64,000 nucleotides of DNA, from the sequence record MN871447.1; one strand, 5' to 3'. A program made the position numbers and the translations under genes. This document shows, piece after piece, positions 8,299 through 62,519 of the stretch. Under the pieces are notes generated by a model. It worked only from the letters and a program-made list of their open reading frames with translations, searched no databases and had not been told where the DNA came from. Every line of letters starts with the position of its first letter. Position 1 is the stretch's first letter.

Positions 8299-8361
8299 GG
8301 TGGCGTTCTCCAGAGGCGTTAGAGGATTCTGTTCACAGATACGTCACGCGCCTAAAAAATA

Positions 8362-8390
8362 ATGAGAGAGAGGACGAACCTCTCTCTCAT
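8362..8390 (-). terminator. Intrinsic terminator
   Basis: 12-bp stem ATGAGAGAGAGG/CCTCTCTCTCAT followed by TATTTTTT. Confidence 0.85.
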
Positions 8391-8395
8391 CAACG

Positions 8396-8869
8396 TTAAT
8401 TAACGAAATAAATGATCACATCTTCTGACAACGTAAAGTTGGTCAGTAACGCGTCGTAGAACTTTTCTTTGCGAACGCGCGTAAAGTAGAAATACGCTTC
8501 GTCAACGTAGACGTGCGTAATCGGCGCTTCGCGGTAAAACTGAGTGTAACCACGTTCATACGGTTTCCCGGCAATAGCTCTGACCTTTTCCGTCGGTGGA
8601 TTAGCGTCACCGTAGAGTCGCGCCTCAAAGTCATCCAGAAGCGTTTCTGTCGGGAGAAAGACCATCGAGTGCTTAGGGTTTTTCTTCACTCGATCGAGCA
8701 CCCATTTCGTCTTACCAGTTTGACGCGGTATTTTAAACCCGATTGTCCGACATTCGCGGAGAATAGTACCGCGCCGCCAATCAATTCGTTTCGCCGTTTC
8801 CGAGGTCTCAGAAATCAACGTTTTCTCTAGTGTCTGCGCTATCGATTCGAAATCAACTTTCTTAGCCAT
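8396..8869 (-). CDS. Small stand-alone P-loop NTPase (terminase/SF2-like ATPase domain)
   Basis: Walker A-like IPRQTGKT and Walker B-like VYVDEA in only 157 aa. Confidence 0.6.
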   Translation of the reverse strand: MAKKVDFESIAQTLEKTLISETSETAKRIDWRRGTILRECRTIGFKIPRQTGKTKWVLDRVKKNPKHSMVFLPTETLLDDFEARLYGDANPPTEKVRAIAGKPYERGYTQFYREAPITHVYVDEAYFYFTRVRKEKFYDALLTNFTLSEDVIIYFVN

Positions 8870-8892
8870 GACGTCTTTTTACCTTTTAACGT

Positions 8893-9243
8893 TTACAAAG
8901 AATGGAACCATCCGTTTTCGTCTGGTTTCTCGGGGAATTTAAACGCGACAGTTTTATTGCGTTTAGCGAACTCTTGGTAGACCTTAGTACCGACCCAAAA
9001 CCCCCGCCGGATAATTTCAACATCGTCCCCGTTCAAACGGAAAGAGAACCGATGCTTCCCCGGGTCAAACGCGATGTCCAGGAAATGACCATCTTCTAAT
9101 TCGTCTACTGCGGACGTAAAGCGAAAATAGCCGCTTTTGTAAAGACACCCTGCCCGACTGGTTTGTCTGGAATTACCTACATTTTTAGGGACAGAAAGAA
9201 AACGCAAATTATCCAAATCAAGTTTCATGTTAATACCTGTCAA
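8893..9243 (-). CDS. Hypothetical protein, paralog family A (possibly AbrB-like)
   Basis: LDIAFDP..HRFSFRL...GFW...NGWF pattern shared with 26314-26733 and 27896-28309. Confidence 0.6.
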   Translation of the reverse strand: MTGINMKLDLDNLRFLSVPKNVGNSRQTSRAGCLYKSGYFRFTSAVDELEDGHFLDIAFDPGKHRFSFRLNGDDVEIIRRGFWVGTKVYQEFAKRNKTVAFKFPEKPDENGWFHSL

Positions 9244-9566
9244 TCGGTAAAGGTAATTGAAAAAGTTCCTTCGTTGCGATGCCAGTTAACCAGGAAGGGT
9301 AACCCTATTTCTTTTAAGATCTCGTTCAACGCACTTGCGGGAGTTTCTTGCTGACTTCTCCCGAAAAAGGGATTAGCGATAGTATTTTGTAGCTCCCAGA
9401 AACAGTTACCGTTTTTCCGCTTCTTAGAGAAGCGTTTTCGGGACGTGACGGGTTGTTTCAGATAGAGATGCAAAGGGCCTTTGTTACTCTGAACCACCAC
9501 TAAACGTACAAACTGGTCGCTGTAACGTAACTCACCAAACAAAATGTCTTTGATTTTCTTTAGCAT
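9240..9566 (-). CDS. Hypothetical protein
   Basis: 108-aa ORF overlapping neighbours by a few bp. Confidence 0.6.
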   Translation of the reverse strand: MLKKIKDILFGELRYSDQFVRLVVVQSNKGPLHLYLKQPVTSRKRFSKKRKNGNCFWELQNTIANPFFGRSQQETPASALNEILKEIGLPFLVNWHRNEGTFSITFTD

Positions 9567-9793
9567 TCGTTTAAATCTCCAGTAATCATCGTGGTTAAAT
9601 TCCTGACTTTATTCAGGGTCGCAATGTCTTTTTCGACCGAGGCCACCGGGATATTGTAAAAGAAAGCGATCTCTTCTACTCGCATACCATGACTGGCAGC
9701 GTTCTCCATCGTTCGGGCGATCTGCGGATTTTCGAATTGTGACATCAGTTCGTCAAACTCGGCCAGGTAAGCCAGATATTTGTCACGTTGCAT
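9560..9793 (-). CDS. Small helix-turn-helix protein
   Basis: HGMRVEEIAFFYNIPVASVEKDI is an HTH pattern; paralogous to 9826-10125. Confidence 0.6.
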   Translation of the reverse strand: MQRDKYLAYLAEFDELMSQFENPQIARTMENAASHGMRVEEIAFFYNIPVASVEKDIATLNKVRNLTTMITGDLNEC

Positions 9794-9825
9794 CCTTAGG
9801 TACCTTTTTACTGTGGCGGGTCAAA

Positions 9826-10125
9826 CTACTCATCGTACCCTTCTAATAGCGGGCTATGTCCGTTTTTAGAGATCCAAGCCTCCGCTAACTTATCAGATTT
9901 TTTCATAATCTCGGTGGCCTCGGTATAAATTTTAATATCATGATCGACATCATCTACCGGAACAGAAAAAGCGGCGGCAATTGTCTCGTCGTCTAAACCG
10001 TTTTCTCGGAACTGAATAAAGTAATGAGGTAAGTCAGTCCCGTGATGTCTCGCGGTAAAAAGTTGATCGTATCCTTTCATCCAAAGTTGATGGATTTCCA
10101 TTTCTTCCTGTTTTTCTTTTGTCAT
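9826..10125 (-). CDS. Small helix-turn-helix protein
   Basis: NGLDDETIAAAFSVPVDDVDHDI is an HTH pattern; paralogous to 9560-9793. Confidence 0.6.
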   Translation of the reverse strand: MTKEKQEEMEIHQLWMKGYDQLFTARHHGTDLPHYFIQFRENGLDDETIAAAFSVPVDDVDHDIKIYTEATEIMKKSDKLAEAWISKNGHSPLLEGYDE

Positions 10126-10153
10126 ATTTTCACCTCTTTCTGAATTTTATACA

Positions 10154-11128
10154 TCAGTCTTCCTTACTGCTCCCGGAAACTACGCTAGTACGAATCCACT
10201 TTATTTTCAGTTGGCGATTAGGGCTATTACGAGCACCGGTCCAATAGCCGTGCCAGTGTGCCCGTCTGATATGCGCTGCTCGCCCGGTCGTCTTCTGTCC
10301 TTTCTTTCGCTTCTCGATTTCTTCGAGGTAATCGACCCCTACCGGAAACTTACGGTGTGCGTTCAGGAACCGTAGGCTATAGTGTTTACCCGACCGTTTC
10401 ATCTGGGTAAGTCGAAAGGTATTACGGAAGTCAGCGCGGTCTTGCAACTCGTATTCCTGCGCAACAAACAATGCCACGTTGAGTAGCTTAGTGTACGTTT
10501 CACGGTACCCGTCACGCATTAGAATATCGACAGCTTTAACCGTATCGATATTGTATTCTTTTGCAGCCCGTACAATAGTAGGGTCAGAAGCAATGACCTC
10601 CTCCAGTGTCAAACCTTCATCAAACGGGAAGAATAACGTTTGCGGGAAGCCGTTATCATTATACGGGTAAACGATCGTTAGACCCTCTTTCCCGCTCCAG
10701 TGTGTAACCGTAGAAAGGAAAATCCCTTCGATAGTCGGTTCCTCCGGGAGAGGGTGTTTGATAGGGCACGCTGAAAGGTCGACGTACCCGGTCCAATGAG
10801 GGATAGTTTTCAAAACACTGAGCGGCAATTTACCGTTGAATTCAGAGTCCAATACATCGGGTAATAATTCAGTAGGGATCTGATATTCAGGTTTAGTAAT
10901 TTGCCAGCAATACGCCATGCTCGTATGCCAAAAGATTTCACGATAATACGGGTTAGTTAAATCGATCTTATTGTTCCAGTTACGATTCTCTCCCCATATT
11001 TCGATAGGGTAGAAATACGGTGGAACCTCCCCTTTCTTTTCCGTGAGGATACGATTGAAGAAATCCTTCGCGTCCCATGCCCGTAAACGGGGTAAGAGCG
11101 TTTTCTCCACTGTCTCCAGTATTTTCAT
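10154..11128 (-). CDS. AcrVA2/FinQ-family-like protein
   Basis: 324 aa; WQITKPEYQI, LPLSVLKTIPHWTGYVDLS and C-terminal AHIRRAHWHGYWTG...IKW match recalled AcrVA2 motifs (LPDWCVYVDIS; PHIRRGHWHGYWQG...VRW) and its ~320-aa length. Confidence 0.65.
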   Translation of the reverse strand: MKILETVEKTLLPRLRAWDAKDFFNRILTEKKGEVPPYFYPIEIWGENRNWNNKIDLTNPYYREIFWHTSMAYCWQITKPEYQIPTELLPDVLDSEFNGKLPLSVLKTIPHWTGYVDLSACPIKHPLPEEPTIEGIFLSTVTHWSGKEGLTIVYPYNDNGFPQTLFFPFDEGLTLEEVIASDPTIVRAAKEYNIDTVKAVDILMRDGYRETYTKLLNVALFVAQEYELQDRADFRNTFRLTQMKRSGKHYSLRFLNAHRKFPVGVDYLEEIEKRKKGQKTTGRAAHIRRAHWHGYWTGARNSPNRQLKIKWIRTSVVSGSSKED

Positions 11129-11431
11129 TTAGCTCTCCTCAGACTCGCGTGTTCCCAGGTTCCCGTTTCCGTTAAAGACGATTTGATAGTCTAACGTACC
11201 TTTACTGTTCAGCTCCTCTAAATGCTCAGAGACGGCCTCGTTATAGGGTTTGAGTAAGTGGTTCTTACCCAGCGCCTCTAGCGTCATGAAAATGATCAGG
11301 GTACTTTGATCAATCGGCGTAATGTTCTTATTCGTCAAGATCTCAATAACACGCGGAATATTCGCCTTGAGTTTCTCTAGGTCTTCATTCACCCGTAATC
11401 CCCTTATAAAACAATTCCATCCCTTTCTCAA
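11129..11431 (-). CDS. Hypothetical protein
   Basis: Tiles; true start probably GTG near 11392. Confidence 0.55.
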   Translation of the reverse strand: MRKGWNCFIRGLRVNEDLEKLKANIPRVIEILTNKNITPIDQSTLIIFMTLEALGKNHLLKPYNEAVSEHLEELNSKGTLDYQIVFNGNGNLGTRESEES

Positions 11432-11990
11432 CGTTACTGCAAAAGACAGAGAAAAGCGCCTCTCGTAGCGATTGCGGCCGGAAGGGGTTATTAGCCTGCA
11501 CGTGAACGTCGTAAACCGCTTTGTTTGCTAAACGTGCAGTGAACGTTTGTTTTGTCAATTTAAGCGTCTTGACGTCATGGCCGTAGGATTTACAGACCTT
11601 CCGTCCCTCGGTAAAGACCAACCCCATCGCACCGTGACCAACCAAAAGTTTGTCAGTCGGTACGAGTAGCGGGTGCTCTTTAGTACGGGGGCTAACAACC
11701 GTCCACCACATGTTCACAGGGATGAACCAATATGCATCTTTCGGGTTAAGATGCGTCCAGTCGCGGATGCAGTTGTACATCTCTTCCTGCGTGGTCGGGC
11801 GGAAGTCGACCTGAACCCCGTTCATATTTTCACTGTGGTCATATTCGTAGATTTTACGGCCCATCTTAACCGAATAGACAAAGGCAATAATCGAATTATC
11901 TTGACGTAAAAGATTTTCTCTTGCCCATTTGCCGTATTCGATCTCTAACGCGATGACCTTTTCTGCAATGCTGTTTTCCATTTCGCTCAC
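11385..11990 (-). CDS. Hypothetical protein
   Basis: 201-aa ORF tiling with neighbours. Confidence 0.65.
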   Translation of the reverse strand: MSEMENSIAEKVIALEIEYGKWARENLLRQDNSIIAFVYSVKMGRKIYEYDHSENMNGVQVDFRPTTQEEMYNCIRDWTHLNPKDAYWFIPVNMWWTVVSPRTKEHPLLVPTDKLLVGHGAMGLVFTEGRKVCKSYGHDVKTLKLTKQTFTARLANKAVYDVHVQANNPFRPQSLREALFSVFCSNVEKGMELFYKGITGE

Positions 11991-11993
11991 CGG

Positions 11994-12368
11994 TTAATTA
12001 ACTAAGTTTTTCAGACTGACTTTCTCTAAGCCAGAGAACATTTTTGAGATTGAATTACCAAAATCTTCCCCTTTCAACTCTTTTTCAAGCGCGTGGTAAA
12101 GTTCGTCGAGCGTTTCATACTCTATTTTCGTTAATGAAGTTGAATAAGCTTTGGCCCGCGCCAAAATATCTTCCTTGTAAACGTAAGCGAAAGCTTCGAT
12201 TTTAGATAAATCGCGCACAGCAGCAACTGTAAGAGCACTATGTAATTTCGGAGATGCTTTTGGGTTCTGCAGCGTCGCCGAGATATTCCCAACAAGAAAC
12301 CCAATAACGTAATCTGATTGTTTAAAAGCAGAGAATAATTTTTCATCGACGTTTTTCAGCGTGTTCAT
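11994..12368 (-). CDS. Hypothetical protein
   Basis: 124-aa ORF with AAGG RBS. Confidence 0.65.
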   Translation of the reverse strand: MNTLKNVDEKLFSAFKQSDYVIGFLVGNISATLQNPKASPKLHSALTVAAVRDLSKIEAFAYVYKEDILARAKAYSTSLTKIEYETLDELYHALEKELKGEDFGNSISKMFSGLEKVSLKNLVN

Positions 12369-12401
12369 TTTGTTTACCTTTTGCGTTTTAAGAAAAAATA
12401 A

Positions 12402-12590
12402 TTAAATATCTAAAGTGGGATTCCACCAAGTAGCCAGGCCGTCCAGCTCTTTGACAACTTTCGCTGCCTGTCGTGCAGGAATACGGTACTTTCTTGCGAC
12501 TCGACGCTTTGCGCTTTTTACCGTGGTCATGCAGGTAGACAGATCGTAGGTGACCAGGTTATCGATTTTCTTACGTAGTGATTCTTTCAT
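12402..12590 (-). CDS. Small basic hypothetical protein
   Basis: 62 aa; SAKRRVARKYRIPARQAAKVV could be an HTH. Confidence 0.55.
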   Translation of the reverse strand: MKESLRKKIDNLVTYDLSTCMTTVKSAKRRVARKYRIPARQAAKVVKELDGLATWWNPTLDI

Positions 12591-12604
12591 TGTTTGGTTC
12601 TCTG

Positions 12605-12871
12605 TTATTGGATAATGATGGCGTTGTCGCTTTTCTTGAGGATCTGTTCACGGGTGTAGAGTTGGTTATCAAAACCCGTAGATGAGATAAAAACGCCGTT
12701 ACCGAAATTGATGTAGCAGCCATCGCTATAAATGACTTCCACTTGTGAATAAAGCCGTTTCGTTAGTTTACACTGCTCTAAATCGTATTCTTTCTTTTTA
12801 GAAAGAAAATAAGGCGTTGCCAACAACATTAGAATAACCAGACCAAGAAGAACATATATCAATTTTTTCAT
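12605..12871 (-). CDS. Small membrane-anchored protein
   Basis: N-terminal hydrophobic segment LIYVLLGLVILMLLA; two Cys in the soluble part. Confidence 0.6.
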   Translation of the reverse strand: MKKLIYVLLGLVILMLLATPYFLSKKKEYDLEQCKLTKRLYSQVEVIYSDGCYINFGNGVFISSTGFDNQLYTREQILKKSDNAIIIQ

Positions 12872-13128
12872 GCGAGTTTCTCTCTGAGTGCCATGTAAAG
12901 TAAACCGACCTGGTCGGCGATGATTTTTCCTCGGCTGATAACAATCGGTTTCTGCGTTCCGTAGAACTCAATCGTTAACTTGATAAAAGGGACATCGCCA
13001 AGTATCCCTTTTAATTTACGGCACTCTTCTTCCTTGCGAACATTTCTGACATCACGAAGAAAGAAGATATAATTCTTATCATTATCATCAACAATGACTT
13101 TATTACCTACGATACTAAACTTAGGCAT
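12868..13128 (-). CDS. Hypothetical protein
   Basis: 86-aa ORF tiling with neighbours. Confidence 0.6.
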   Translation of the reverse strand: MPKFSIVGNKVIVDDNDKNYIFFLRDVRNVRKEEECRKLKGILGDVPFIKLTIEFYGTQKPIVISRGKIIADQVGLLYMALREKLA

Positions 13129-13474
13129 GTTTTCTTACCTTAACTAAGGGAACATTAATCGATTTAACGTTGTTGATTTTATAGCGCTGAGCAGAAACCC
13201 CAAAGGTGCGTACTCGAATCCCAGTCTCTCCGACGAAACGCAGGTGAGAGAGGGTAGAAAGCAAAGTAACAAAGTCTATTTTGGTTATTCGACTCCATCC
13301 CAGAATAGCAACGGCGTTTTTCCCGACCAAACTCTCGATACAGATTTGAACAGGGTGGGTGTTAGGGGCGGCCAGAGACCGCTCCTCAATGACCGCTTCT
13401 AACCAATTGCTAAGAGGAGCAGATTCCTCTAACGTGGGGATACGGTATTCTTTAACTGCCATAGCTGTTCTCAA
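13121..13474 (-). CDS. Hypothetical protein
   Basis: 117-aa ORF tiling with neighbours. Confidence 0.6.
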   Translation of the reverse strand: MRTAMAVKEYRIPTLEESAPLSNWLEAVIEERSLAAPNTHPVQICIESLVGKNAVAILGWSRITKIDFVTLLSTLSHLRFVGETGIRVRTFGVSAQRYKINNVKSINVPLVKVRKHA

Positions 13475-13952
13475 AGCGGAAGAAAGAACCCTCGATGGAG
13501 ACCATCACCTTGCTTTCCGCAGGGTACAATTCGTCTAAGGCATCTGCCATCACTTTCTCAATATCGATGTCTCCCCTCACACAAGGACAAATACCGCCAG
13601 TGATTTCTTTAGTGGCGGTCGAGTCAAGTGTGAGCTTCATGACAAGGTCACAGTCAGCATCGACACACGCCATGACGCTGACGTTGTCTCTTTCATAGTC
13701 CAACTGGAAGCGGTAGTTATTATTGCCTGAATTATGAATATGGAACTCCTCAGGGATCTCCCCCGTCTTGTTACATTTCTCAAGAAGCGAAAGGACAAGA
13801 TTGACGTGTTCTTTGACTAAATGAACAACGTTGTTTTTCATTTTCTCTACGGCTTCTTTTTGTCCTTTAACATGGGACATAATCGCATTGAAAGCGACTT
13901 CAGAAGAAACAAAGGTTTTTAAAACCGCAGCAGAACGAAATTCAGTGGACAT
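13452..13952 (-). CDS. Hypothetical protein, first gene after an early-type promoter
   Basis: 166 aa; GGAG RBS; promoter at 14010-14032. Confidence 0.65.
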   Translation of the reverse strand: MSTEFRSAAVLKTFVSSEVAFNAIMSHVKGQKEAVEKMKNNVVHLVKEHVNLVLSLLEKCNKTGEIPEEFHIHNSGNNNYRFQLDYERDNVSVMACVDADCDLVMKLTLDSTATKEITGGICPCVRGDIDIEKVMADALDELYPAESKVMVSIEGSFFRFENSYGS

Positions 13953-14009: not shown

Positions 14010-14032
14010 CACTCAAGTGATATAGGCTTTAA
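14010..14032 (-). promoter_or_regulatory. Putative phage early promoter, copy 2
   Basis: TTAAAGCCTATATCACTTGAGTG; heads the ~5.6-kb gene run containing the AcrVA2-like gene. Confidence 0.75.
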
Positions 14033-14051: not shown

Positions 14052-14083
14052 AAAAGAAAGAGGGAATGACCCCTCTTTCTTTT
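14052..14083 (-). terminator. Intrinsic terminator
   Basis: 13-bp stem AAAAGAAAGAGGG/CCCTCTTTCTTTT followed by a long T run on minus strand. Confidence 0.85.
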
Positions 14084-14090: not shown

Positions 14091-15407
14091 TTAGTTCAGA
14101 GAACGCCCTGTTTGAACGACGACTTCGCCTTCTTTCAGGTAGATTTTCTTGCGCGGCTTACGCAGCGCCGTTGCCAGCGGGATATCGCTCTTAGGAACGA
14201 CATCAAACTTCGGTAAACCCGCCGCCGCGCGAGCTTCAACGGCCTCCATCGGGGTCAGCATACGGAAGTGTAACGGCTCGCCAAGATAGTGACGGCCATC
14301 GCGCATCAGTGCCGGTTCGATTTTCGATTTGTCGGTCAGGTTAGTCGTGATAATGATTTTACGCGTAGTGGCGCTCCCTACGCCGTCGGTTTCGTTCAGC
14401 AATTCTGACATCATCGTGTTACCGTCAGCACGCGGACGTAAGAGGATATCCCCATCTTCCACAATCACGATTGGGAAGGTAGGCTCTTTACGGGTTTTCG
14501 CATCGTGGCTGTTTGGCAGCGTCAGCATATTACGGGTATTTTCAAAATGCGAACGGTCTTTGAAAAGTTCATAACGCGCATTTTCACCACTGGAGATTTC
14601 AACCCTTTCCATTTTGTCGTCGCTGAACGCGAAGATCTTAGAGATGAATTCTGGGTTTTCGAGGACCTCAGTTTTCTTCGCGTAGATCGGGAAAAGGTTC
14701 AGCGCCACGCAGGCAGCGGAAATGGCGGTCGATTTCCCGGTACCGGGTTCACCCATGAGAATCAGAACCGATTCATCAGACTGAATAAAGTCTTCGATGA
14801 GCGCTTCCACACCGCCGTTCAGGAACGGATAGAATTCCTTCTTCGTTTCGCCGCTATGACGCATGACTCTGGGTTCAAGGTGAGTCATTTCACCCATTGG
14901 CGTTTTCCGAATAACGACTTCAGAATAATAAAATTCCTCTTTCGTTTCGTCAGTACGGTGATCGATTTTGATATTTTCTTGGATCTGAATCAACAGATCG
15001 TCGTAGATATCTTTCGCCATCATACCTTCGATAGAGAGGTTAGACCTGATGTCGCTTTGAATACGAATACAGGCGATCGGACGATTGTATTTATCCAGTC
15101 CAATGAACTGGTCATCGTCGTGCTGGAAGAAGCGATGTTTTTCCAGGAACGCAGTTAACCACTGCGTGGATTCGAAGTAGTATTTATTCTGATCGAACAT
15201 TCGATCGGTATCGATGTTGAAGATAGGGAGTCGATTTGCAGTCAGGAAATGACGTACCATTTTATTGACGCGAATTTCTTCCTCGTTATTGCCTACGAAA
15301 CGTGCGTAGCTCCCGTAAGCTTCGCCGAACGATTCGAAGATATCATTCAATGATTTAATAGGTGCGTTATCAGAGAGAGATCCAGAGAAAAAAGCGTGCT
15401 TGTCCAT
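14091..15407 (-). CDS. AAA+ ATPase
   Basis: Walker A GEPGTGKS, Walker B IVIVED, sensor IIITTN, arginine finger ALMRDGR. Confidence 0.85.
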   Translation of the reverse strand: MDKHAFFSGSLSDNAPIKSLNDIFESFGEAYGSYARFVGNNEEEIRVNKMVRHFLTANRLPIFNIDTDRMFDQNKYYFESTQWLTAFLEKHRFFQHDDDQFIGLDKYNRPIACIRIQSDIRSNLSIEGMMAKDIYDDLLIQIQENIKIDHRTDETKEEFYYSEVVIRKTPMGEMTHLEPRVMRHSGETKKEFYPFLNGGVEALIEDFIQSDESVLILMGEPGTGKSTAISAACVALNLFPIYAKKTEVLENPEFISKIFAFSDDKMERVEISSGENARYELFKDRSHFENTRNMLTLPNSHDAKTRKEPTFPIVIVEDGDILLRPRADGNTMMSELLNETDGVGSATTRKIIITTNLTDKSKIEPALMRDGRHYLGEPLHFRMLTPMEAVEARAAAGLPKFDVVPKSDIPLATALRKPRKKIYLKEGEVVVQTGRSLN

Positions 15408-15449: not shown

Positions 15450-15472
15450 CAATGACGTGATATAGATCTTAA
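15450..15472 (-). promoter_or_regulatory. Putative phage early promoter, copy 3
   Basis: TTAAGATCTATATCACGTCATTG upstream of AAA+ ATPase. Confidence 0.75.
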
Positions 15473-19608: not shown

Positions 19609-19631
19609 CACTAGGGTGATATAGGTGTGAA
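19609..19631 (-). promoter_or_regulatory. Putative phage early promoter, copy 4
   Basis: TTCACACCTATATCACCCTAGTG. Confidence 0.75.
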
Positions 19632-19665: not shown

Positions 19666-21045
19666 TTAACTTACAGCTTTTAAGACGTTATAACTTACTG
19701 CTTCGACAGGTTTAGTGACGTCGTACGTCCGTAGCGCGTTTTCATAGGCTACCGGGTCATGTTTGTTCAGCATGAAAAGCGCTTGAACAGATGCACCGGG
19801 TAAAGGAGAGAAAGGAAGGTTATTACTAGGTTCCGTATCAGGGAATGCCATTTTGAAGAACTGACGAATTTCTTTATCGCCTAATACTTCTACTTCAGCC
19901 CTGACGTCTATTCTCCCGTCCCGCAGCAGCGCATCGTCAAGTTTCTCAGGGCGGTTAGTCGTCAGGAAAACGATAACATCATTCAACCGCAAGACGCCGT
20001 CTAACGCGTTGAGGAAATCTGACAAGCTACCGTTTAGGTACTCGTCCATTGCTTTATCGTCAGAACTTTGTTCTTCAACGACGAAAGGGGTATTTTTGAG
20101 TTCTTCTGGGTTTTCCGGTTTGTTTCCCTCTTTTAAGTCAATGATAACCTTTTCTTTACTCCGCGCTTTCGTGAACGAATACGTATCAATATCCTCGATA
20201 ATCACAACCCCGCCAGCTGCTCGTTGGAAAAGCGCTTGGTATTGTAATCCACCGGCGGGTTTGAGGATATGAATATCGCGCCCTAACGCGGCCGCTAATG
20301 CCGAAATCAAACTGCTCTTTCCGGTGCCTGGTAAACCGTATAACAACACTGTGAACTTATAAGCCAGTCCTCGTGATTCGTACCAGTCTTTACTCTTATT
20401 AAAATCGAAGATAGGGTCGATTAACTCGCGCTGGACTTTATCCGTAACGACTATGGTTTTAAGGTCTCTTTTCTTCAGTCGGCACAAATAATTCCAACTG
20501 TCGGTAGTATTGACAAATGTCCGTATGTTGTCTTTACCCGTGTCTTTCAGCATAAACTCATCCATCAGGTTTAAGATAGGTTTATGGCTGCGACCGAATT
20601 TACTAATGCTAAGACGGTATTTCGAATTACTCGCAGCGTTAGCATCAATTTCCGTGATAGAGAAAACAAACACAGTGCCCTTATGAAGAAAGAAATGTGA
20701 CCCCACACCAGGCCCCACTGCGGCGGACTCTCCATTCACGTCGCCATCAATAGTTATCGTCCTACTCCAATGGAACCAACTATTCTTAGCAAACCATTTC
20801 AGGAATGCCCCATATTGTTCGGAGTTATAATTACTCCAGTTGGTTCCAGAGGTGTTAAAAACCAAACTAGTAACAAACTGACGTTTGACCCATTGTGCTA
20901 CCGCCTTGGGCGTTTTGATTAACCCCCAACCAATCGCCCCTGACACCGCAATGGAACTCGCGGCGACAATTGCATTCTGTGCCATAGGGTAGTCTTTAAA
21001 GTTAGAAAGAATATGGTCGTAAAATGACATTAGTTGTTCGAGCAT
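19666..21045 (-). CDS. BCS1-like membrane-anchored AAA+ ATPase
   Basis: N-terminal TM (IVAASSIAVSGAIGWGLI) plus BCS1_N-like region; GLPGTGKS, VIIEDID, LSDFLNALDG, TTNRPEKLDDALLRDGRID. Confidence 0.8.
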   Translation of the reverse strand: MLEQLMSFYDHILSNFKDYPMAQNAIVAASSIAVSGAIGWGLIKTPKAVAQWVKRQFVTSLVFNTSGTNWSNYNSEQYGAFLKWFAKNSWFHWSRTITIDGDVNGESAAVGPGVGSHFFLHKGTVFVFSITEIDANAASNSKYRLSISKFGRSHKPILNLMDEFMLKDTGKDNIRTFVNTTDSWNYLCRLKKRDLKTIVVTDKVQRELIDPIFDFNKSKDWYESRGLAYKFTVLLYGLPGTGKSSLISALAAALGRDIHILKPAGGLQYQALFQRAAGGVVIIEDIDTYSFTKARSKEKVIIDLKEGNKPENPEELKNTPFVVEEQSSDDKAMDEYLNGSLSDFLNALDGVLRLNDVIVFLTTNRPEKLDDALLRDGRIDVRAEVEVLGDKEIRQFFKMAFPDTEPSNNLPFSPLPGASVQALFMLNKHDPVAYENALRTYDVTKPVEAVSYNVLKAVS

Positions 21046-32245: not shown

Positions 32246-32268
32246 CATCTAAGTGATATAGACTTGAA
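32246..32268 (-). promoter_or_regulatory. Putative phage early promoter, copy 5
   Basis: TTCAAGTCTATATCACTTAGATG. Confidence 0.75.
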
Positions 32269-32805: not shown

Positions 32806-32828
32806 CAATCAAGTGATATAGATGTTAA
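32806..32828 (-). promoter_or_regulatory. Putative phage early promoter, copy 6
   Basis: TTAACATCTATATCACTTGATTG. Confidence 0.75.
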
Positions 32829-43371: not shown

Positions 43372-43866
43372 TCACTCAGGTGATATAGATTTTAAAAGCC
43401 GTCGAGTTTCTTCCCAAAACTCCACTAACCATTCTCCGCTTTTAGGCGTAACAACTTTAACGTCGTCTTCCCAGACACGCGCCCCTTTCTCCATTCGCCA
43501 ATTACCGAAAACGTAGTAATGGGTAAAAGGTAGGGTTGAATTGACCAGCGCTTGGTATTGGTGTTTGTAAGTATTCAATTTCGCCAGATTAGCAGCTTTG
43601 ATAATCGAGAGGAAATCGGGATGATGAACCACTTCCAGTTTCTTCCCAAATGCTTTCGCCTCGTTACCGTACAAGCCTCTGAGGTATTGGTGTTTAAAAC
43701 CGGTTTTTGCGTAATACCAAAACCCTTCCATACTTTCAAAGTTTCCGTACTCAGGGTGAATGAAAGGTGTCTTTGGAAAGTGAGAGAGAAAGAACCCGAG
43801 ACGGTTCTTGGACTTAGAGTAAATGTTGATGTGGTCAATACCGTCATTGTTTGGGTTCAAAGTCAT
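43372..43866 (-). CDS. NADAR-superfamily protein (T4 gp30.3-like)
   Basis: DGIDHINIYSKS...LGFFLSHF..TPF...GNFESMEGFWYY...IIKAANLAKL. Confidence 0.7.
   Translation of the reverse strand: MTLNPNNDGIDHINIYSKSKNRLGFFLSHFPKTPFIHPEYGNFESMEGFWYYAKTGFKHQYLRGLYGNEAKAFGKKLEVVHHPDFLSIIKAANLAKLNTYKHQYQALVNSTLPFTHYYVFGNWRMEKGARVWEDDVKVVTPKSGEWLVEFWEETRRLLKSISPE
43373..43395 (-). promoter_or_regulatory. Putative phage early promoter, copy 7
   Basis: TTAAAATCTATATCACCTGAGTG; inside the 3' end of the NADAR gene, directly upstream of sspB. Confidence 0.75.
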
Positions 43867-45892: not shown

Positions 45893-47962
45893 TTAAGCGG
45901 TTTCGTAATCAGTAATCTGACGACTGGTGTAAATGAACCGGTAAGGGTTAGGTTTGCTGTACTGTGCTGCCGCACCGATCGGCGTATTGTAGAGATGAAT
46001 CTCGCCGCTTCCGTACGTTTGGAAGCTGGACTTCACGCCGTTGTCGTAACTACAGCTGTAGAAGTAAGACGCCCCTCTACCGTAAACGTTAGAACCTACC
46101 GTATCTTTCCCGACGACATACAATGCACCTTTAATGCTGTCGGTGCTTTGGTTGCCGCTGGCGATCGTTTCGAGGTGAGCCACGAAGGTATTCAGTCCGT
46201 ACTCTTCGATAGGGTAACCGTCTACATTTCGGTAAGTCGATTTGAATCGAATCCCGATTACACCCGGCCCTACTAACGACCCACGTTTTTGTCCATTACC
46301 CGAACCGAAGTGATTCTCGGATACGCAACTGACTTCGAGGAACGTGCCTTGTACCCCCAACGGAATTGTCTGACGGTCACTGCCGTGATAGGTACCGTAA
46401 GTCCCGCCGTTACTGAAATGGCAATCTTGAGAGAAGACCTCAGCCCCGTAGTTGTTCAGGCACGCCGTTGAACAGGTTCCGGTAACCTCCACGCCCTTCA
46501 ACCATAAAGACGGTTTCGCATTGATCGCCACAGACTCAGCACCCAAACCAATGTCGGTATCAGAGACTTTCACATTGGAGACGTAAATTGTACTGTTCCC
46601 AGTGAAATTCAGCCCCGTGTTCCTCACAACGACTTTAACGTTACTGTCAGGTTTACGGCTATTCGACGTCTGAACAATAATCGCAGTGGACGTCACGCAG
46701 TAGCTTCCTACTGTGGCCACTACCGCAGCAGGACCGTCTACTTCCACTAAGCGTTTAGGTAACCCGTTACTGTCTAACGTACCGTAATCAAAGACACCGG
46801 CGATACTTAGACCCGTTGCTAAATATTGATAGACAACGTTAGAGTCGGAGTAAAGCGACCAGTTAGTGATCCCCAGATCGCCCGTAAAGGTCGGTACGGT
46901 GCCACCGGTGCCATAGATACCGATCTTACGGTCATTCACTGTACGTTGAACGAAGAACGGTTTAGAGCCCTTCACGACGATACTGGTGGCAATAGGTGAT
47001 TTATCAATCGCAGCGTTAAGGGTTTTCAGTGGTTTAGCTTCACTTCCGTCATTCCCGTCTGCACCGAGATCAGAGTCAACGTAGTAGACCATCCCGTAGG
47101 GGAAGTACCATTCGCTCAGATCAAAGTCGGTTGAGAATCGCATCAGTCCCTGGGCCAACGCTCCCTCGTAAGGGAAGACCGCAGCGAGTGGATCAAAAAC
47201 CGCAGGGAGTTTAGGAACCACCGGCAAACAGTTATTTGCACTGTCGTAACTGGTCTCGTAAGAAGGGCCGGTCAGTTCCAGTAATTGCCCAGCGCGGAAA
47301 CGCGCCACTGTATTACCCGATTGTAGCGAACTTTGAGTCATTGACAACGACCCGTCATTCCCTAAAATAACCCCAGTATTCGAGGTAGTCGGTGAGAAAC
47401 TCCCTTGTTTCCCAACCACAAAGTTTTCACCGTTAACTCGGCTCTTCCCGGAGAGCGTAAAGATTTTACCGTCTGACTGATAAAGTTGGTACGGGGTGCG
47501 GAGCCAATCGCGAATCGTGGTTTCCTGACCGAAATAAACTTCGAGTGTCCCGATGTACATCAATGAACTGGCAACGGCTTTCAATGTATAGACACCGATT
47601 GTGGTCGTCAACGCAGTGGGAATGAAGGTTTCCATTTTGATATCGGTCATGTCCAGCTGTAGACCGTACAACGTATTCAAACGGTCAACAATATCTTCAG
47701 TCGTGAATATTCCGGCGGTAGACATGAACACCACGGGCTCGGTCAGGACTTTATTGAGATTGACCCGGTTGTAATCAAAGACTGCTGAATCACGGTAGTC
47801 ACCTGCATCGGTCGCTACCGCGGTGATACGCGTGTTAAAATTCCCGGTCGTCAGGGCAGTGAGGTTGATGAAATCCAAATCGCTTTCTTTAAAAAAGGCG
47901 TCGTACTGCGTGTTCAGCTGACGAACCAGAAGCGCTTTACTTTTTAACGAGAAATCTGTCAT
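45893..47962 (-). CDS. Virion structural/tail-fibre protein with C-terminal right-handed beta-helix
   Basis: N-terminus resembles phiKZ-type virion anchor (NTRITA...FDYNRVNL..VL); YYVDSDLGADGNDGSEAKPLKTL starts a DUF1565/PL9-like beta-helix; paralog of 47979-50039. Confidence 0.7.
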   Translation of the reverse strand: MTDFSLKSKALLVRQLNTQYDAFFKESDLDFINLTALTTGNFNTRITAVATDAGDYRDSAVFDYNRVNLNKVLTEPVVFMSTAGIFTTEDIVDRLNTLYGLQLDMTDIKMETFIPTALTTTIGVYTLKAVASSLMYIGTLEVYFGQETTIRDWLRTPYQLYQSDGKIFTLSGKSRVNGENFVVGKQGSFSPTTSNTGVILGNDGSLSMTQSSLQSGNTVARFRAGQLLELTGPSYETSYDSANNCLPVVPKLPAVFDPLAAVFPYEGALAQGLMRFSTDFDLSEWYFPYGMVYYVDSDLGADGNDGSEAKPLKTLNAAIDKSPIATSIVVKGSKPFFVQRTVNDRKIGIYGTGGTVPTFTGDLGITNWSLYSDSNVVYQYLATGLSIAGVFDYGTLDSNGLPKRLVEVDGPAAVVATVGSYCVTSTAIIVQTSNSRKPDSNVKVVVRNTGLNFTGNSTIYVSNVKVSDTDIGLGAESVAINAKPSLWLKGVEVTGTCSTACLNNYGAEVFSQDCHFSNGGTYGTYHGSDRQTIPLGVQGTFLEVSCVSENHFGSGNGQKRGSLVGPGVIGIRFKSTYRNVDGYPIEEYGLNTFVAHLETIASGNQSTDSIKGALYVVGKDTVGSNVYGRGASYFYSCSYDNGVKSSFQTYGSGEIHLYNTPIGAAAQYSKPNPYRFIYTSRQITDYETA

Positions 47963-47978
47963 TTTAAATTCGCCCCAG

Positions 47979-50039
47979 TTAAGCGGTATAAATGAATTGA
48001 TACGGGGTCAGAAGCTGCGTGGCCGGTTTAGTGCCAATGTCGGTATCGAACAGGGCGATTTTCCCTACTCCGTTTGGAATGAACGAGAACGCCGAGTTAT
48101 CCCCTTTACAACTCCAGTACTGAGCCGATGCAGTGGTCGTCGCATTCGCGCCGGTGGTAAAGTGCGCCAGATTACTCAACGTGTTCGTCACGTTATTGGA
48201 CTGGCAAGCGATATTCACCGAGAACGTTCCTTCACCGGAGTCTTTGACGTGAGAACCGTCACAATGGCTGTATACGGAGTTCAGACGCAGGATTGTCCCG
48301 TATGCAGAGAGACCGGAGGCCGCAGAGGTATGGTTACTGTCAAAGCCACAGTAGCTGACCGTTGCTCTATTCTCCACGATCCAATACTTACTGTTCATCG
48401 CAGGTAATACACGGTCACTGTTGTAACTGAATCCGCCACTGAAACCAAATTGTGCAACACAGTCTTGATGTGCAACGTTATAACCGTAGCTTCCGAAGGA
48501 TGGACCCTTGAACGTCCACCCGAACCGACAGGCGTTCATGTACAGATATCCGTAGGTTCTCGGTGTGGTCATGTCCGCGATAAAGCCGTTGTAGGAGAGA
48601 TCAAAATTACATTTCTCCATGAACACGTTACCCGCATCGGCGACTGACCCTGAGAGAGTTTTTGCAATCAGGTAAACATTACTGTCTGGTTTGCGGCTAT
48701 CGGTTAATCGAACGTAGACCCGATTATTGGTGTTGTCGATGTAATAAGAGTGCGGGGTGTTCGCACAGTCAGCAATCGAGGTCTTAGCAGTCATTCTCCC
48801 GTACCCGGCATCACTGTATACCGTTTTGTCTACCACGGCAGCAATGTCACTGATTTTACTGTACCAAGTGTTGGCATCGTACCCTGACCAATCGGTACTT
48901 TGACGGGTGGAGGTAAAGATAGGGTTAACGTCCCCGTAACCAATAATGTCAACTGTACGTTGGCGGATAGTCTGTGTCCAGCCAGAATCGGCGTCGTAGT
49001 AAAGATCCGCGTAACCTTTTACGCGAATAACTCTGGCAGCAGGTAATCTGTTTATCGCACGACGGAAGGTTTTGAACGCGGTCGCTGCGGTCGAACCGTC
49101 ATTGGTATCGGAACCGTCTTTAATATCAACGAAGACCACTGTACCTGTACCGGCACGTTTACTGGTGACGTCGAAGCCCAAAGAGTAGGTCAACGTCCCT
49201 TCATTCAAGGACGCTGTCAATCCTAACGTTTCAGGGATCACTGCAAGTTGAGACGGTAACATCGGCACTTTAGGAAGCAAGTTACCCGTGGCGTCGTAAG
49301 ACGTTTCACCGTTGACTCCTAAGGTCTCCAGTAGACGACCATTGCGGAAGCGTCCTATCAACGTGTTCTTGCTGTTTGGGTGATAGTCGATTGCCGGGAT
49401 AATATTCCCAGTAGGAGAAAGATAAAGCGCAGTTAACCCGGAACGTTGCGAAATAGTACGGCTGACGTCAACGATGTCTTTCCCAGCCAGTTTCCAGTGA
49501 CCGCCTAAAAAGCTGAGGGTGTTATAGTCACTTCCCACGGTAAACTGTAACGCATTGAAATACTGGTAAACCGCCTCTTGTTTGCCGAGATAGATAGTTA
49601 CGCTACCGGTGTACACGAGGTGGTTATCTACCACGCTGACTGTGATCTTTCTGACGCCAGTGGCAATGTCGTCGGGGCGATACGGGCCATCTACAAGATC
49701 AGTGGTAGTTAGGGCGAGTTGGTATTTCTCGTTCAGGTACGGAATTAAATCAACGATACGAGAAAGGTTATAGTCTTCCAGTTGACAATAAGGTCGGGCC
49801 AATAGCGTTTTAAAGCTCAGGCGATTATACTGTAATGTTACACCGAGCGATTGTAGGGACGAGCCGTTAGTGACGTTAATCGTCGTATTCAATCCGTTAA
49901 CGACGGTGGTGTTAACTGCGGGTGTACCTAACGAGATTGACGAAGTCGTGTACATTGTCCCGTTTGCTTCGTTAATCAGGTCAACGGCAATCTGTTTTGG
50001 GGTCTGTTTTAAATCAACCATTTTCAATTCATCCCTCAT
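47979..50039 (-). CDS. Virion structural/tail-fibre protein with C-terminal right-handed beta-helix
   Basis: LINEANG...LGTP...NTTINV...YNRLSF anchor; VFVDIKDGSDTNDGSTAATAFKT; shares RFRxGxLLE, ETSYD and SRKPDSNV with 45893-47962. Confidence 0.7.
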   Translation of the reverse strand: MRDELKMVDLKQTPKQIAVDLINEANGTMYTTSSISLGTPAVNTTVVNGLNTTINVTNGSSLQSLGVTLQYNRLSFKTLLARPYCQLEDYNLSRIVDLIPYLNEKYQLALTTTDLVDGPYRPDDIATGVRKITVSVVDNHLVYTGSVTIYLGKQEAVYQYFNALQFTVGSDYNTLSFLGGHWKLAGKDIVDVSRTISQRSGLTALYLSPTGNIIPAIDYHPNSKNTLIGRFRNGRLLETLGVNGETSYDATGNLLPKVPMLPSQLAVIPETLGLTASLNEGTLTYSLGFDVTSKRAGTGTVVFVDIKDGSDTNDGSTAATAFKTFRRAINRLPAARVIRVKGYADLYYDADSGWTQTIRQRTVDIIGYGDVNPIFTSTRQSTDWSGYDANTWYSKISDIAAVVDKTVYSDAGYGRMTAKTSIADCANTPHSYYIDNTNNRVYVRLTDSRKPDSNVYLIAKTLSGSVADAGNVFMEKCNFDLSYNGFIADMTTPRTYGYLYMNACRFGWTFKGPSFGSYGYNVAHQDCVAQFGFSGGFSYNSDRVLPAMNSKYWIVENRATVSYCGFDSNHTSAASGLSAYGTILRLNSVYSHCDGSHVKDSGEGTFSVNIACQSNNVTNTLSNLAHFTTGANATTTASAQYWSCKGDNSAFSFIPNGVGKIALFDTDIGTKPATQLLTPYQFIYTA

Positions 50040-50062
50040 TATACGGGGCGGTTAAAGTACGA

Positions 50063-50072
50063 GTCATAGAAA
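50063..50072 (-). promoter_or_regulatory. Putative late promoter TTTCTATGAC
   Basis: Same motif recurs at 50904, 58001 and 60272; TATG core as in phiKZ late promoters. Confidence 0.5.
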
Positions 50073-50111
50073 GGTTTTGGGACAAAAAAGAAAAGCGCGA
50101 GAAGGAGACAA

Positions 50112-50143
50112 CAGGAGAAGAGAGCGTCTGCTCTCTTCTCCTG
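50112..50143 (-). terminator. Terminator hairpin
   Basis: 14-bp stem CAGGAGAAGAGAGC/GCTCTCTTCTCCTG. Confidence 0.8.
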
Positions 50144-50147
50144 GGAA

Positions 50148-50555
50148 TTATTCATCGTCTTCGAAGTCTTCCGGTACAGATTGGTAATCGTCATCGTCGT
50201 AGTCGTCCCAATCCTCTTCCTCGCTGTCGTCAAGTTCATCGATGATCTTGTTGTCAGCTTCTTCCATGAACCAGCCTTTCTCAGCCAGTGTAGCAGCAAA
50301 GACGTTGTTCCCTTCTTCGATCAGCGTTTCGGTCACCGCCCCTGAGTCATTCTCAGTAACGGCAACCACCGTGAGTTCTTCGCCGTCAGCGGTCTTATCG
50401 TTGACATCCGTTTTATAGAGTTCAAACCCTAACTGTTCGTTGACACTTTCTAATGTTTCAGAAAGGTCGAGTGGGTCAACCGGACGACCGTCGTTGTCGA
50501 TGACTTCGAAAGTCTCTTCGTCGGTACTGAATTTCAGGATAGTGCGATTTGTCAT
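50148..50555 (-). CDS. Highly acidic protein
   Basis: 135 aa, D/E-rich throughout, ends DDSEEEDWDDYDDDDYQSVPEDFEDDE. Confidence 0.7.
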   Translation of the reverse strand: MTNRTILKFSTDEETFEVIDNDGRPVDPLDLSETLESVNEQLGFELYKTDVNDKTADGEELTVVAVTENDSGAVTETLIEEGNNVFAATLAEKGWFMEEADNKIIDELDDSEEEDWDDYDDDDYQSVPEDFEDDE

Positions 50556-50881
50556 TTCCAGTCCTCCTGGGTGCGTTTAATAAAGAGTGCGTCAACGACA
50601 GTCAGATCGACAGGGATCAGCTCAGTCGCCGCATGGGGTTGTATAAAGTAAAGCGTCAGAGTTGTGTCGTTGGTGAGTTTTCCAACCACGTTGTAAAGAA
50701 CACCGTTGTACATTCCGGATGTGCCGGTTTTCAGATTGAGTGCAACAATGAGTTGTCGTCCCAGTAAATCGCAGTTGTTACCAGGGTAAGTGTCGCGGAG
50801 TTTAAAGAGTACTCGACCCACCTTTTCTTGCCATTCTTTCATTAACACATTGAGAATCGTTTCTCTTGTAATAACCTGCAT
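50552..50881 (-). CDS. Hypothetical protein (start MQVITRE)
   Basis: AAGGA RBS before ATG 50881; the longer track ORF runs through the promoter motif. Confidence 0.6.
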   Translation of the reverse strand: MQVITRETILNVLMKEWQEKVGRVLFKLRDTYPGNNCDLLGRQLIVALNLKTGTSGMYNGVLYNVVGKLTNDTTLTLYFIQPHAATELIPVDLTVVDALFIKRTQEDWK

Positions 50882-50903
50882 CTTGTCTTCCTTATTGGTC
50901 GTT

Positions 50904-50913
50904 ATCATAGAAA
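50904..50913 (-). promoter_or_regulatory. Putative late promoter TTTCTATGAT
   Basis: Matches late motif; 22 bp upstream of the MQVITRE start. Confidence 0.45.
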
Positions 50914-51002
50914 GTTTACTTAAAAATAGATTTGGGGTAGTCAAGAAAAACAGGCGGTATATTGCTATGTTAACACCTAAAATGAACAAGGCATAAGTAG
51001 CG

Positions 51003-51215
51003 ATGAACTATTCAATCATTCCCACCACAGCGCAAAAGATTGTTGAGATTACCCGCAGTAAAATTGACCCGAATGCGGTCACGCTCATTTTCGAAGACGG
51101 GGCAAACGAAACATTTCTGGATTGGTTTGTCCAGAAACATAAACCAGCAATCGGTCGTTTTCTGGCCAAAGACACCGACGGTTTCCTGCACGTAGTAGAC
51201 ACGATCGACGCTTAA
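51003..51215 (+). CDS. Only credible plus-strand gene; small phage hypothetical protein
   Basis: Occupies its own space (overlapping minus ORF is weak); LIFEDG...WFVQKHKPAIG...DG resembles a known small phage family; ends at a bidirectional hairpin. Confidence 0.65.
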   Translation: MNYSIIPTTAQKIVEITRSKIDPNAVTLIFEDGANETFLDWFVQKHKPAIGRFLAKDTDGFLHVVDTIDA

Positions 51216-51223
51216 AAGAACAC

Positions 51224-51256
51224 AGAAAGGAAAGGGGTTAGTCCCCTTTCCTTTCT
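51224..51256. terminator. Bidirectional terminator between convergent genes
   Basis: 14-bp stem AGAAAGGAAAGGGG/CCCCTTTCCTTTCT. Confidence 0.8.
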
Positions 51257-51500
51257 AGTCTATATTGTTTTTCAGGATGTCTTCGGCAGGGTAGAAATGA
51301 TCTTCTACGATTTTACCGAATTGATGGGCGCCAGTGAGTGCGTTTTCTACGGGGGTGATGTAAGCGGCTTTATTGTCCCACGGCGGGAGAAGCTCTGAGA
51401 GCAACAGTGCGGCTTCGTTTAATAAAGGTAGGTTCTCGTCAGGGACGAATGAGATTGTCTCTTGTAGGCTCTCTAAGAGCGCTATACGGGGAGTAAACAT
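51255..51500 (-). CDS. Hypothetical protein
   Basis: 81 aa, AAGGG RBS; lies downstream of the structured leader/ncRNA. Confidence 0.6.
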   Translation of the reverse strand: MFTPRIALLESLQETISFVPDENLPLLNEAALLLSELLPPWDNKAAYITPVENALTGAHQFGKIVEDHFYPAEDILKNNID

Positions 51501-51517
51501 AGTTGACCCTTAAAGGT

Positions 51518-51637
51518 GAAATAAGACAGGGACCGAAGTCCCCGAACTTATAAATTAAAATGAATGTCTCGTTATTAACCGGCACTGTGAGAAACGGTTA
51601 AATAGGAGTAATCGGAGGGTGTCTTATTTCCTCTTCA
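51518..51637 (-). ncRNA. Candidate structured small RNA or attenuator leader
   Basis: Early promoter at 5' end; no ORF; 11-bp end-to-end stem (51620-51630 with 51518-51528); internal stem TTAACCG/CGGTTAA; GGGAC-TTCG-GTCCC hairpin. Confidence 0.5.
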
Positions 51638-51658
51638 CAATTGTAATATAGATGTGAA
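51636..51658 (-). promoter_or_regulatory. Putative phage early promoter, copy 8 (TATTAC variant)
   Basis: TTCACATCTATATTACAATTGTG fits every consensus position. Confidence 0.7.
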
Positions 51659-51670
51659 AAAGAATCGAGA

Positions 51671-53398: not shown

Positions 53399-53407
53399 CT
53401 AAACCTC

Positions 53408-55231: not shown

Positions 55232-55250
55232 GATTATTCCTTGTAGAAAG

Positions 55251-55272
55251 CCAGAGAGGGATTCCTCTCTGG
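55251..55272 (-). terminator. Intergenic hairpin
   Basis: 9-bp stem CCAGAGAGG/CCTCTCTGG between the 892-aa and 607-aa genes. Confidence 0.55.
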
Positions 55273-55277
55273 TGTTA

Positions 55278-57956: not shown

Positions 57957-58000
57957 TTCGGTACCTGTATAGTCTGGGTAAATAAGAGGGTATCTAGATC

Positions 58001-58010
58001 GTCATAAAAA
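58001..58010 (-). promoter_or_regulatory. Putative late promoter TTTTTATGAC
   Basis: 5 bp downstream of terminator, upstream of 892-aa tailspike. Confidence 0.5.
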
Positions 58011-58015
58011 CACAA

Positions 58016-58039
58016 GAGTAGGGCCGATCGGCCCTACTC
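58016..58039 (-). terminator. Terminator hairpin
   Basis: 10-bp stem GAGTAGGGCC/GGCCCTACTC followed by TTGTGTTTTT. Confidence 0.8.
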
Positions 58040-58063
58040 GCTATGAACAACCTATAAAACAAT

Positions 58064-58297
58064 TCAACTACCGGAATCGTCTTCGCTAGTCCTGTCTTCT
58101 AAAAGAAAAGAACCATCTAGACCCTTTTCCGATAAGAACCCAAGTGCGGCTTCCTGATAGTTTTCTACTTCTTCAAAGAAAACGATAGCCTCCCCCAAAT
58201 CAATTCTGGAAAGAAAATAAACGTTCTCTCGCACAGTATCTTTGTAGATATAAATCATCACAAATACCCTAAAGTCGGATGTTGATCGGAAAACCAA
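58064..58297 (-). CDS. Small acidic protein coupled to tailspike stop (probable start MIYIYK; possible chaperone)
   Basis: Internal ATG overlaps the TGA of 58258-60276. Confidence 0.5.
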   Translation of the reverse strand: MVFRSTSDFRVFVMIYIYKDTVRENVYFLSRIDLGEAIVFFEEVENYQEAALGFLSEKGLDGSFLLEDRTSEDDSGS

Positions 58298-60276: not shown

Positions 60277-60281
60277 AGAAA
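60272..60281 (-). promoter_or_regulatory. Putative late promoter TTTCTATGAC
   Basis: Abuts terminator 60281-60312; identical to 50063-50072. Confidence 0.5.
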
Positions 60282-60312: not shown

Positions 60313-60315
60313 AAT

Positions 60316-62481: not shown

Positions 62482-62519
62482 TTATTTTTCCTTTTAAGGA
62501 GGGGAACCCCCTCCTCCTT

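Follow-up and report, generated by a model that had tools for sequence, protein, structure and literature searches.

To our knowledge, no bacterial protein other than AcrVA2 has so far been found to recognize a nascent polypeptide and bring about the destruction of its mRNA. The family to which it belongs is very large, yet the only targets that we know of are Cas12a and that of the old observation made with FinQ.

The mRNA loss mediated by AcrVA2 is abolished by substitutions H286A, R288A, and H291A and is moderately affected by W79A and D89A (Marino et al., bioRxiv 10.1101/2022.11.29.518452). The same study indicated that residues H286, R288, and H291 are needed for mRNA loss, not for binding, and that binding alone is not inhibitory. 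An editorial (PMC13728456) presenting a study published in Nature (Marino et al. 2026) describes an association of the C-terminal part of AcrVA2 with both ribosomes and polysomes, the cutting being performed by a cellular enzyme. FinQ is an AcrVA2 homolog that lowered the mRNA of F-plasmid transfer genes (Marino et al.). A variety of mobile elements, among them megaphages, carry AcrVA2 homologs, usually in the absence of Cas12a, and other targets have already been proposed for these homologs (Marino et al.). AcrVA2-like proteins were also reported in huge phages (Al-Shayeb et al. 2020). The family, the mechanism, the huge-phage homologs, and the idea of other targets are all already in print.

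The first-pass annotation of the locus described here had presented the silencing of a host mRNA other than that of Cas12a as an undescribed use of the mechanism. This claim is not supported, because the work of Marino et al. and of Al-Shayeb et al. (2020), Pfam family PF26125, and the annotation of a related phage protein as "putative protein FinQ" precede it. In the literature searched, we found no paper studying the function of any jumbo-phage AcrVA2-like homolog. The contribution of the present analysis is a well-documented family member and its genomic setting, not a new mechanism or idea.

Relationship of the phage protein to AcrVA2 and FinQ

The DNA analyzed (the window, 64,000 nucleotides) is 100% identical to part of record MN871447.1, entitled "Serratia phage KpLz_1_41", a genome of 305,006 bp with Klebsiella pneumoniae as the host. 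The genome is that of a jumbo phage, as proposed in the first-pass annotation. Nine further Klebsiella jumbo-phage records are 97 to 99% identical to the window region. KpLz-2_45, a 98% identical relative, is assigned to the genus Siatvirus of the family Chimalliviridae, which comprises nucleus-forming jumbo phages. In KpLz-2_45, the gene under study is MOA67_gp018 and is annotated "hypothetical protein".

The gene (Table 1) is an intact open reading frame running from ATG to TGA with no internal stop codon. The position and the three motifs that the first-pass annotation had quoted for the 324-residue product were recovered; the strand, which had not been given, is the minus strand. On the plus strand, the in-frame reading of the same interval is riddled with stop codons, and the longest open reading frames inside it do not exceed 63 residues. 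The three motifs are WQITKPEY (residues 75 to 82), LPLSVLKTIPHWTGYVDLS (residues 101 to 119), and HIRRAHWHGYWTG...KIKW (residues 286 to 311). The TAA stop codon of the upstream open reading frame (11129-11131) abuts the ATG codon. The middle domain contains a block of conserved residues (W75, Y82, P102, P110, W112, Y115, and G135) that aligns with residues 76 to 141 of AcrVA2. The C-terminal domain holds H286, R288, H291, H293, G298, and W311. Its counterpart in AcrVA2 is the part required for mRNA loss, for which ribosome binding has been reported.

Table 1. Features of the AcrVA2-like gene and of its surroundings (window coordinates)
Feature	Position	Strand	Remarks
AcrVA2-like/FinQ-like protein gene	10154..11128	minus	Intact, 324 residues plus stop codon
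N-terminal helical region, residues 1-72	10913..11128	minus	Clade specific
Middle alpha/beta domain, residues 73-264	10337..10912	minus	Acidic, pI 5.6
C-terminal domain, residues 265-324	10157..10336	minus	One helix and four beta strands, pI 10.5
Shine-Dalgarno-like GAGGAG	11135..11140	minus	6 nt before the ATG of the AcrVA2-like gene
Predicted transcription unit	8396..13952	minus	14 tightly packed ORFs, AcrVA2-like gene ninth
Intrinsic-terminator-like hairpin	8360..8392	minus	14 pairs and T run, downstream border of the unit
Terminator-like hairpin of the preceding gene (438-residue ATPase-like protein)	14052..14083	minus	Upstream border of the unit
CTATATCAC promoter-like motif	14017..14025	minus	Heading the unit, T/A-rich stretch before the motif
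All CTATATCAC copies	2614-2622, 14017-14025, 15457-15465, 19616-19624, 32253-32261, 32813-32821, 43380-43388	minus

Sequence comparisons supported the proposal of the first-pass annotation that the protein is an AcrVA2 homolog. A phmmer search with the single protein against all PDB chains returned AcrVA2 (7ci1_A, 323 residues) as the sole match (E = 4.5e-7), in two collinear stretches comprising residues 73 to 123 and 274 to 313. A profile restricted to the close jumbo-phage clade (7 sequences, 46 to 85% identical) matched AcrVA2 with an E value of 4.5e-11, again in two collinear blocks located at the same positions in both proteins; the direct sequence similarity is limited to ~120 residues, and the remainder emerges from the family profile and the fold. 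A family profile built from 51 diverse relatives, with the phage protein as its first row, matched AcrVA2 with an E value of 2.6e-44 and covered AcrVA2 residues 11 to 188 and 200 to 319. The PHROG family phrog_6160 also matched the phage protein (E = 1.8e-35).

Structure prediction led to the same assignment. An AlphaFold model (pLDDT, 86.3; pTM, 0.88), built on the 51-sequence family alignment that is rich in closer AcrVA2 relatives, displayed helices up to residue ~78, a middle part of mixed alpha/beta character, and a C-terminal helix followed by four strands. In a Foldseek search against the PDB, AcrVA2 chains 7ci2_A, 7ci1_B, and 7ci1_A ranked first (E = 4.5e-12 to 2.1e-11; probability, 1.0), and no entry other than AcrVA2 chains had an E value below 0.07. 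The AcrVA2 alignments comprised 280 to 349 columns with TM scores of 0.46 to 0.58 and sequence identities of 15 to 18%. For the match with the best E value (4.5e-12; TM scores of 0.56/0.58 over 349 columns), the TM score of 0.56 and an rmsd of ~7 Å indicate that the domain arrangement differs from that of AcrVA2 or is uncertain. The likeness of the phage protein to AcrVA2 is far above chance. Since a second collinear block was detected and since the profile and the fold cover most of AcrVA2, this likeness is not confined to the short C-terminal motif, the outcome that would have spoken against the initial assignment.

The Foldseek entries ranking after AcrVA2 were mostly Hsp70/DnaK substrate-binding domains (E = 0.07 to 1; probability, ≤0.18), a curious finding for a family that recognizes nascent peptides. 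These matches are not significant, and we did not retain them as a clue to nascent-peptide binding.

The residues essential for mRNA loss in AcrVA2 are conserved in the phage protein. Using a one-residue offset for the PDB chain, AcrVA2 residues H286, R288, and H291 matched H286, R288, and H291 of the phage protein, which are found in 56, 57, and 57 of the 57 aligned members, respectively. AcrVA2 W79 matched W75 (56/57 members). The position of D89 is not conserved, being occupied by P85 in the phage protein, by Asp in 36 members, and by Pro in 8 members. The first 72 residues differ in their distribution: their mean identity is 62% within the close jumbo-phage clade, versus 12 to 16% in comparison to all other members, including the other jumbo-phage members, and BLAST alignments to most family members begin near residues 73 to 75 of the phage protein. 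AcrVA2 and FinQ are likewise similar at the C terminus and divergent at the N terminus (Marino et al.). Residues 1 to 72 are a candidate for part of the target-recognition surface.

The family assignment was also consistent with existing annotations. A precomputed match to PF26125 ("AcrVA2-like") is available for a 99% identical protein and for all 121 relatives listed. Our direct Pfam scan of the phage protein returned no match because the copy of Pfam used does not contain the PF26125 model, and scans with NCBIfam and PADLOC returned nothing useful. Distant relatives are named "AcrVA2 family anti-CRISPR protein" in genome annotations, and BFVD holds predicted structures of the phage protein and its Erwinia and Dickeya homologs, which are all entered as uncharacterized. 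At an E-value threshold of ≤1e-3, 5,731 clusters at 50% identity matched the family profile. In a neighbor-joining tree, a crude distance tree with long branches, the jumbo-phage proteins were located apart from the plasmid and prophage members, which suggests that they form a separate group. Together, homology, fold, and conserved key residues identify the phage protein as a member of the AcrVA2 family.

Genomic setting and candidate early promoter

Every likely gene of the 64-kb window is located on the minus strand, and the AcrVA2-like gene lies within a predicted transcription unit bordered by terminator-like hairpins (Table 1). The unit is headed by the 9-mer CTATATCAC, located ~65 nt upstream of the first open reading frame. 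This 9-mer is present in 7 exact copies in the window, versus 0.26 expected, all of them on the minus strand and between open reading frames, often just past a terminator hairpin. In phage FBKp24 (genus Maaswegvirus, family Chimalliviridae), it occurs at the equivalent site, behind the equivalent terminator (L002:2770-2778). Jumbo phages that encode their own RNA polymerases carry, upstream of early operons, a conserved AT-rich motif ~10 nt in length, and this motif was an early promoter wherever it was tested (review, PMC7598289). CTATATCAC is thus a candidate early promoter for the virion RNA polymerase of this phage group. The recurrence of the motif, its position in FBKp24, and the published description make the early operon proposed in the first-pass annotation a reasonable inference. 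Judging from the motif, the AcrVA2-like gene most likely uses a phage-specific promoter and is expressed early. A scan for sigma-70 promoters detected 13 sites, versus 13.7 in shuffled sequence; since there was no excess, host-type promoters are not indicated.

Scans with PHROGs and Pfam of ten neighboring open reading frames, a set covering all but three small open reading frames of the unit, detected no significant function and no helix-turn-helix (HTH) domain. Since the neighbors have no recognizable function, the neighborhood provides no clue to the target. No Aca-like HTH gene or acr-aca layout was detected among the ten neighbors scanned, the AcrVA2-like gene being embedded in the 14-gene phage unit. 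The GC content of the gene is similar to that of its surroundings and hence shows no sign of recent acquisition. A second copy was not found: each phage record contains the gene at one place, and there is no paralog in the 64-kb window.

Several additional features of the locus and of related loci were recorded. A 264-kb metagenomic phage contig encodes a homolog (33% identity) of the 99-residue open reading frame found directly downstream of the AcrVA2-like gene (9826-10125); on the contig, this homolog is located directly upstream of the AcrVA2-like gene (L008:5704-5973). A homolog of the 99-residue open reading frame was absent from the FBKp24 locus examined; the 99-residue protein could be a loosely linked partner or its position could be a coincidence. 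A 12.5-kb metagenomic contig (L009, 1-4488) encodes a 45% identical homolog of the AcrVA2-like protein near six tandem DUF7941 paralogs on the opposite strand, with an HTH gene and a BubE-family gene also nearby. Beyond the unit, the 438- to 459-residue proteins encoded at 14091-15407 and 19666-21045 match overlapping PHROG families, some of which are annotated as ATPases (phrog_7485 and phrog_14322). The FBKp24 counterpart of the 14091-15407 protein is annotated as an AAA family ATPase. A separate terminator and promoter-like motif lie downstream of each of the two genes. At its right end (45893-63797), the window contains a battery of large tail-fiber, tail-spike, and depolymerase-like genes, including the paralog sets 45893-47962 with 47979-50039 and 58258-60276 with 60316-62481 and 62520-63797. 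This battery fits the branched tail fibers described for the related phage FBKp24.

Proposed mode of action and candidate targets

The explanation that we hold, with moderate confidence, is that this protein is an early factor of a nucleus-forming phage that acts in the manner of AcrVA2, by co-translational destruction of an mRNA, on a target that is not Cas12a. By analogy with AcrVA2, the basic C-terminal domain, with residues H286, R288, and H291, probably docks the protein on translating ribosomes, and the N-terminal and middle domains probably recognize the first residues of one nascent protein. Recognition would lead a cellular RNase to destroy the mRNA of the recognized protein. We infer the early timing from the promoter-like motif, and ribosome docking, mRNA decay, and the nature of the target from the comparison with characterized family members.

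Rather than Cas12a, the target is more likely to be a protein of the host or of a rival mobile element that is synthesized in the cytoplasm of the infected cell. Several points make such a different target likely. Type V-A CRISPR is not known to be a feature of Klebsiella, Erwinia, Dickeya, Salmonella, or E. coli, the hosts of the phages encoding the protein and its jumbo-phage relatives. The phage nucleus of Chimalliviridae already shields the phage DNA from DNA-cutting CRISPR nucleases, and residues 1 to 72 do not resemble the N terminus of AcrVA2. In addition, the family is mostly found in the absence of Cas12a (Marino et al.). We propose, more tentatively, that the early factor might erase the mRNA of one such host or rival protein at cytoplasmic ribosomes, in a phage whose DNA is out of reach of DNA-cutting defenses; candidate targets would then be induced RNA-targeting or abortive-infection defenses. 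If this were the case, the protein would provide the first identified non-CRISPR target of the AcrVA2 mechanism in a phage.

The relationship to FinQ, which the first-pass annotation had also suggested, raises another option. Pairwise BLASTP of the phage protein against an annotated plasmid FinQ (361 residues) gave an E value of 1e-17 with 28% identity over 274 columns (residues 75 to 312), confirming that the two proteins are related. A tblastn search of plasmids with the phage protein retrieved 540 records containing a homolog, the best matches being annotated "protein finQ" (E = 1e-10). The fact that 486 of these 540 records are conjugative plasmids indicates that mobile elements employ this family in their conflicts with one another. 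The phage protein could accordingly be a weapon against a rival element, lowering the mRNA of a gene of a co-resident plasmid, a prophage, a satellite, or a co-infecting phage, as FinQ lowered that of F-plasmid transfer genes. We consider this unlikely: the similarity to FinQ amounts to no more than 28% identity and does not extend to the N-terminal region, there is no obvious reason for a lytic jumbo phage to prevent conjugation, and the neighborhood contains no pointer to a plasmid or satellite target.

The conservation of the residues required for mRNA loss bears on a different possibility, namely that the phage uses the family scaffold for another action, such as simply binding or inhibiting the ribosome or a completed host protein, with no directed decay of an mRNA. 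Binding of AcrVA2 to peptides of mature Cas12a has also been described, and both the low identity to AcrVA2 and the lack of conservation at the position equivalent to D89 are compatible with such a divergence. Nonetheless, we judge this option improbable: the phage protein retains the three residues on which mRNA loss, but not binding, depends, these residues hardly vary across the family, and binding by itself is not inhibitory in the case of AcrVA2.

Comparison of Siatvirus with Maaswegvirus revealed that the AcrVA2-like protein is 85% identical between the two genera, in a syntenic unit in which the neighboring products are 31 to 62% identical, with the exception of a 62-residue open reading frame (94%). 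FBKp24 lacks counterparts of three neighboring open reading frames (11994-12368, 11129-11431, and 9826-10125). In this mosaic unit, the small genes surrounding the conserved AcrVA2-like gene are variable. The dN/dS ratio of this gene is ~0.06, with dS near saturation, and the gene is under strong purifying selection. Only 60% of the 4-kb region surrounding the gene (window positions 9000-13000) is represented in vB_kp_MJ359, whereas the coverage is 90% for three further close relatives. More distant homologs (~24 to 28% identity) are present in unrelated neighborhoods in other Enterobacterales jumbo phages belonging to the genera Risingsunvirus, Agricanvirus, and Seoulvirus (all Chimalliviridae) and Alexandravirus. 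The close relatives all infect Klebsiella, and the more distant jumbo-phage relatives infect Erwinia, Dickeya, Salmonella, and E. coli. At the search sensitivity used, Pseudomonas phage records, including those of phiKZ-like phages, contained no homolog, indicating that the gene is accessory.

These data may be examined in relation to a regulatory role in which the protein would remove one of the phage's own mRNAs co-translationally, in the switch from early to late expression. Conservation across two genera that greatly exceeds that of the neighbors and strong purifying selection fit a job tied to a conserved partner, and the cytoplasm, in which a factor of this kind would operate, is the site of phage mRNA translation. 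This role is nevertheless distinctly doubtful for an accessory gene that has no detected homolog in Pseudomonas phiKZ-like phages, whose homologs in other Chimalliviridae are only ~24% identical and located in unrelated neighborhoods, and for a family that offers no precedent for self-regulation. Finally, a true anti-CRISPR function against Cas12a, as for AcrVA2, is highly improbable in spite of the shared family and fold, the retention of the key C-terminal residues, and the name "AcrVA2 family anti-CRISPR protein" borne by some relatives, because of the arguments given above for another target and because no Aca-like HTH gene accompanies the gene among the ten neighbors scanned.

Co-translational silencing of a protein other than Cas12a thus remains our preferred explanation. 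The phage protein offers a clean case for finding a second target of the AcrVA2 mechanism, because it is strongly conserved, probably expressed early, and encoded by a phage to which an anti-Cas12a protein would probably be of no use. The identity of the target would show what nucleus-forming phages still must silence in the cytoplasm.

Comparison with known systems

The phage protein (324 residues) and AcrVA2 of Moraxella bovoculi (323 residues; 7ci1/7ci2) are of nearly equal length and display the same order of domains, with a helical N-terminal part, an alpha/beta middle part, and a small beta-strand C-terminal domain. They have in common the residues W79, H286, R288, and H291 (AcrVA2 numbering) and the HxRRxHWHGYWxG...W block. 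The two proteins differ by their low overall identity (15 to 18%), by the lack of sequence relationship of the first 72 residues, and by the presence of P85 at the position of D89. AcrVA2 is carried by a Moraxella prophage, in which its gene is located beside acrVA1, whereas the phage protein is carried by a lytic nucleus-forming Klebsiella jumbo phage, and its target, in contrast to that of AcrVA2, is probably not Cas12a.

FinQ from IncI/IncF-type plasmids is homologous to the phage protein over residues 75 to 312 of the latter and has the C-terminal motif in common with it. FinQ is a plasmid-borne protein of 361 residues that differs in its N-terminal region and whose action concerns the F transfer genes, whereas the 324-residue protein is phage borne: the carriage by conjugative plasmids that characterizes FinQ does not apply to this AcrVA2-like gene, which is part of a lytic jumbo phage genome.

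The closest counterpart outside Siatvirus is gp195 of FBKp24 (Maaswegvirus), with which the protein shares 85% identity, a syntenic unit, and the CTATATCAC promoter-like motif. The homologs from Erwinia phages RisingSun (gp126) and Special G (gp231, annotated "putative protein FinQ"), from Seoulvirus EC001, and from Alexandravirus have the family, the size, and the conserved residues in common with the Klebsiella phage protein. Outside Siatvirus and Maaswegvirus, these homologs are ~24 to 28% identical to it and are located in unrelated gene neighborhoods, and they may have different targets.
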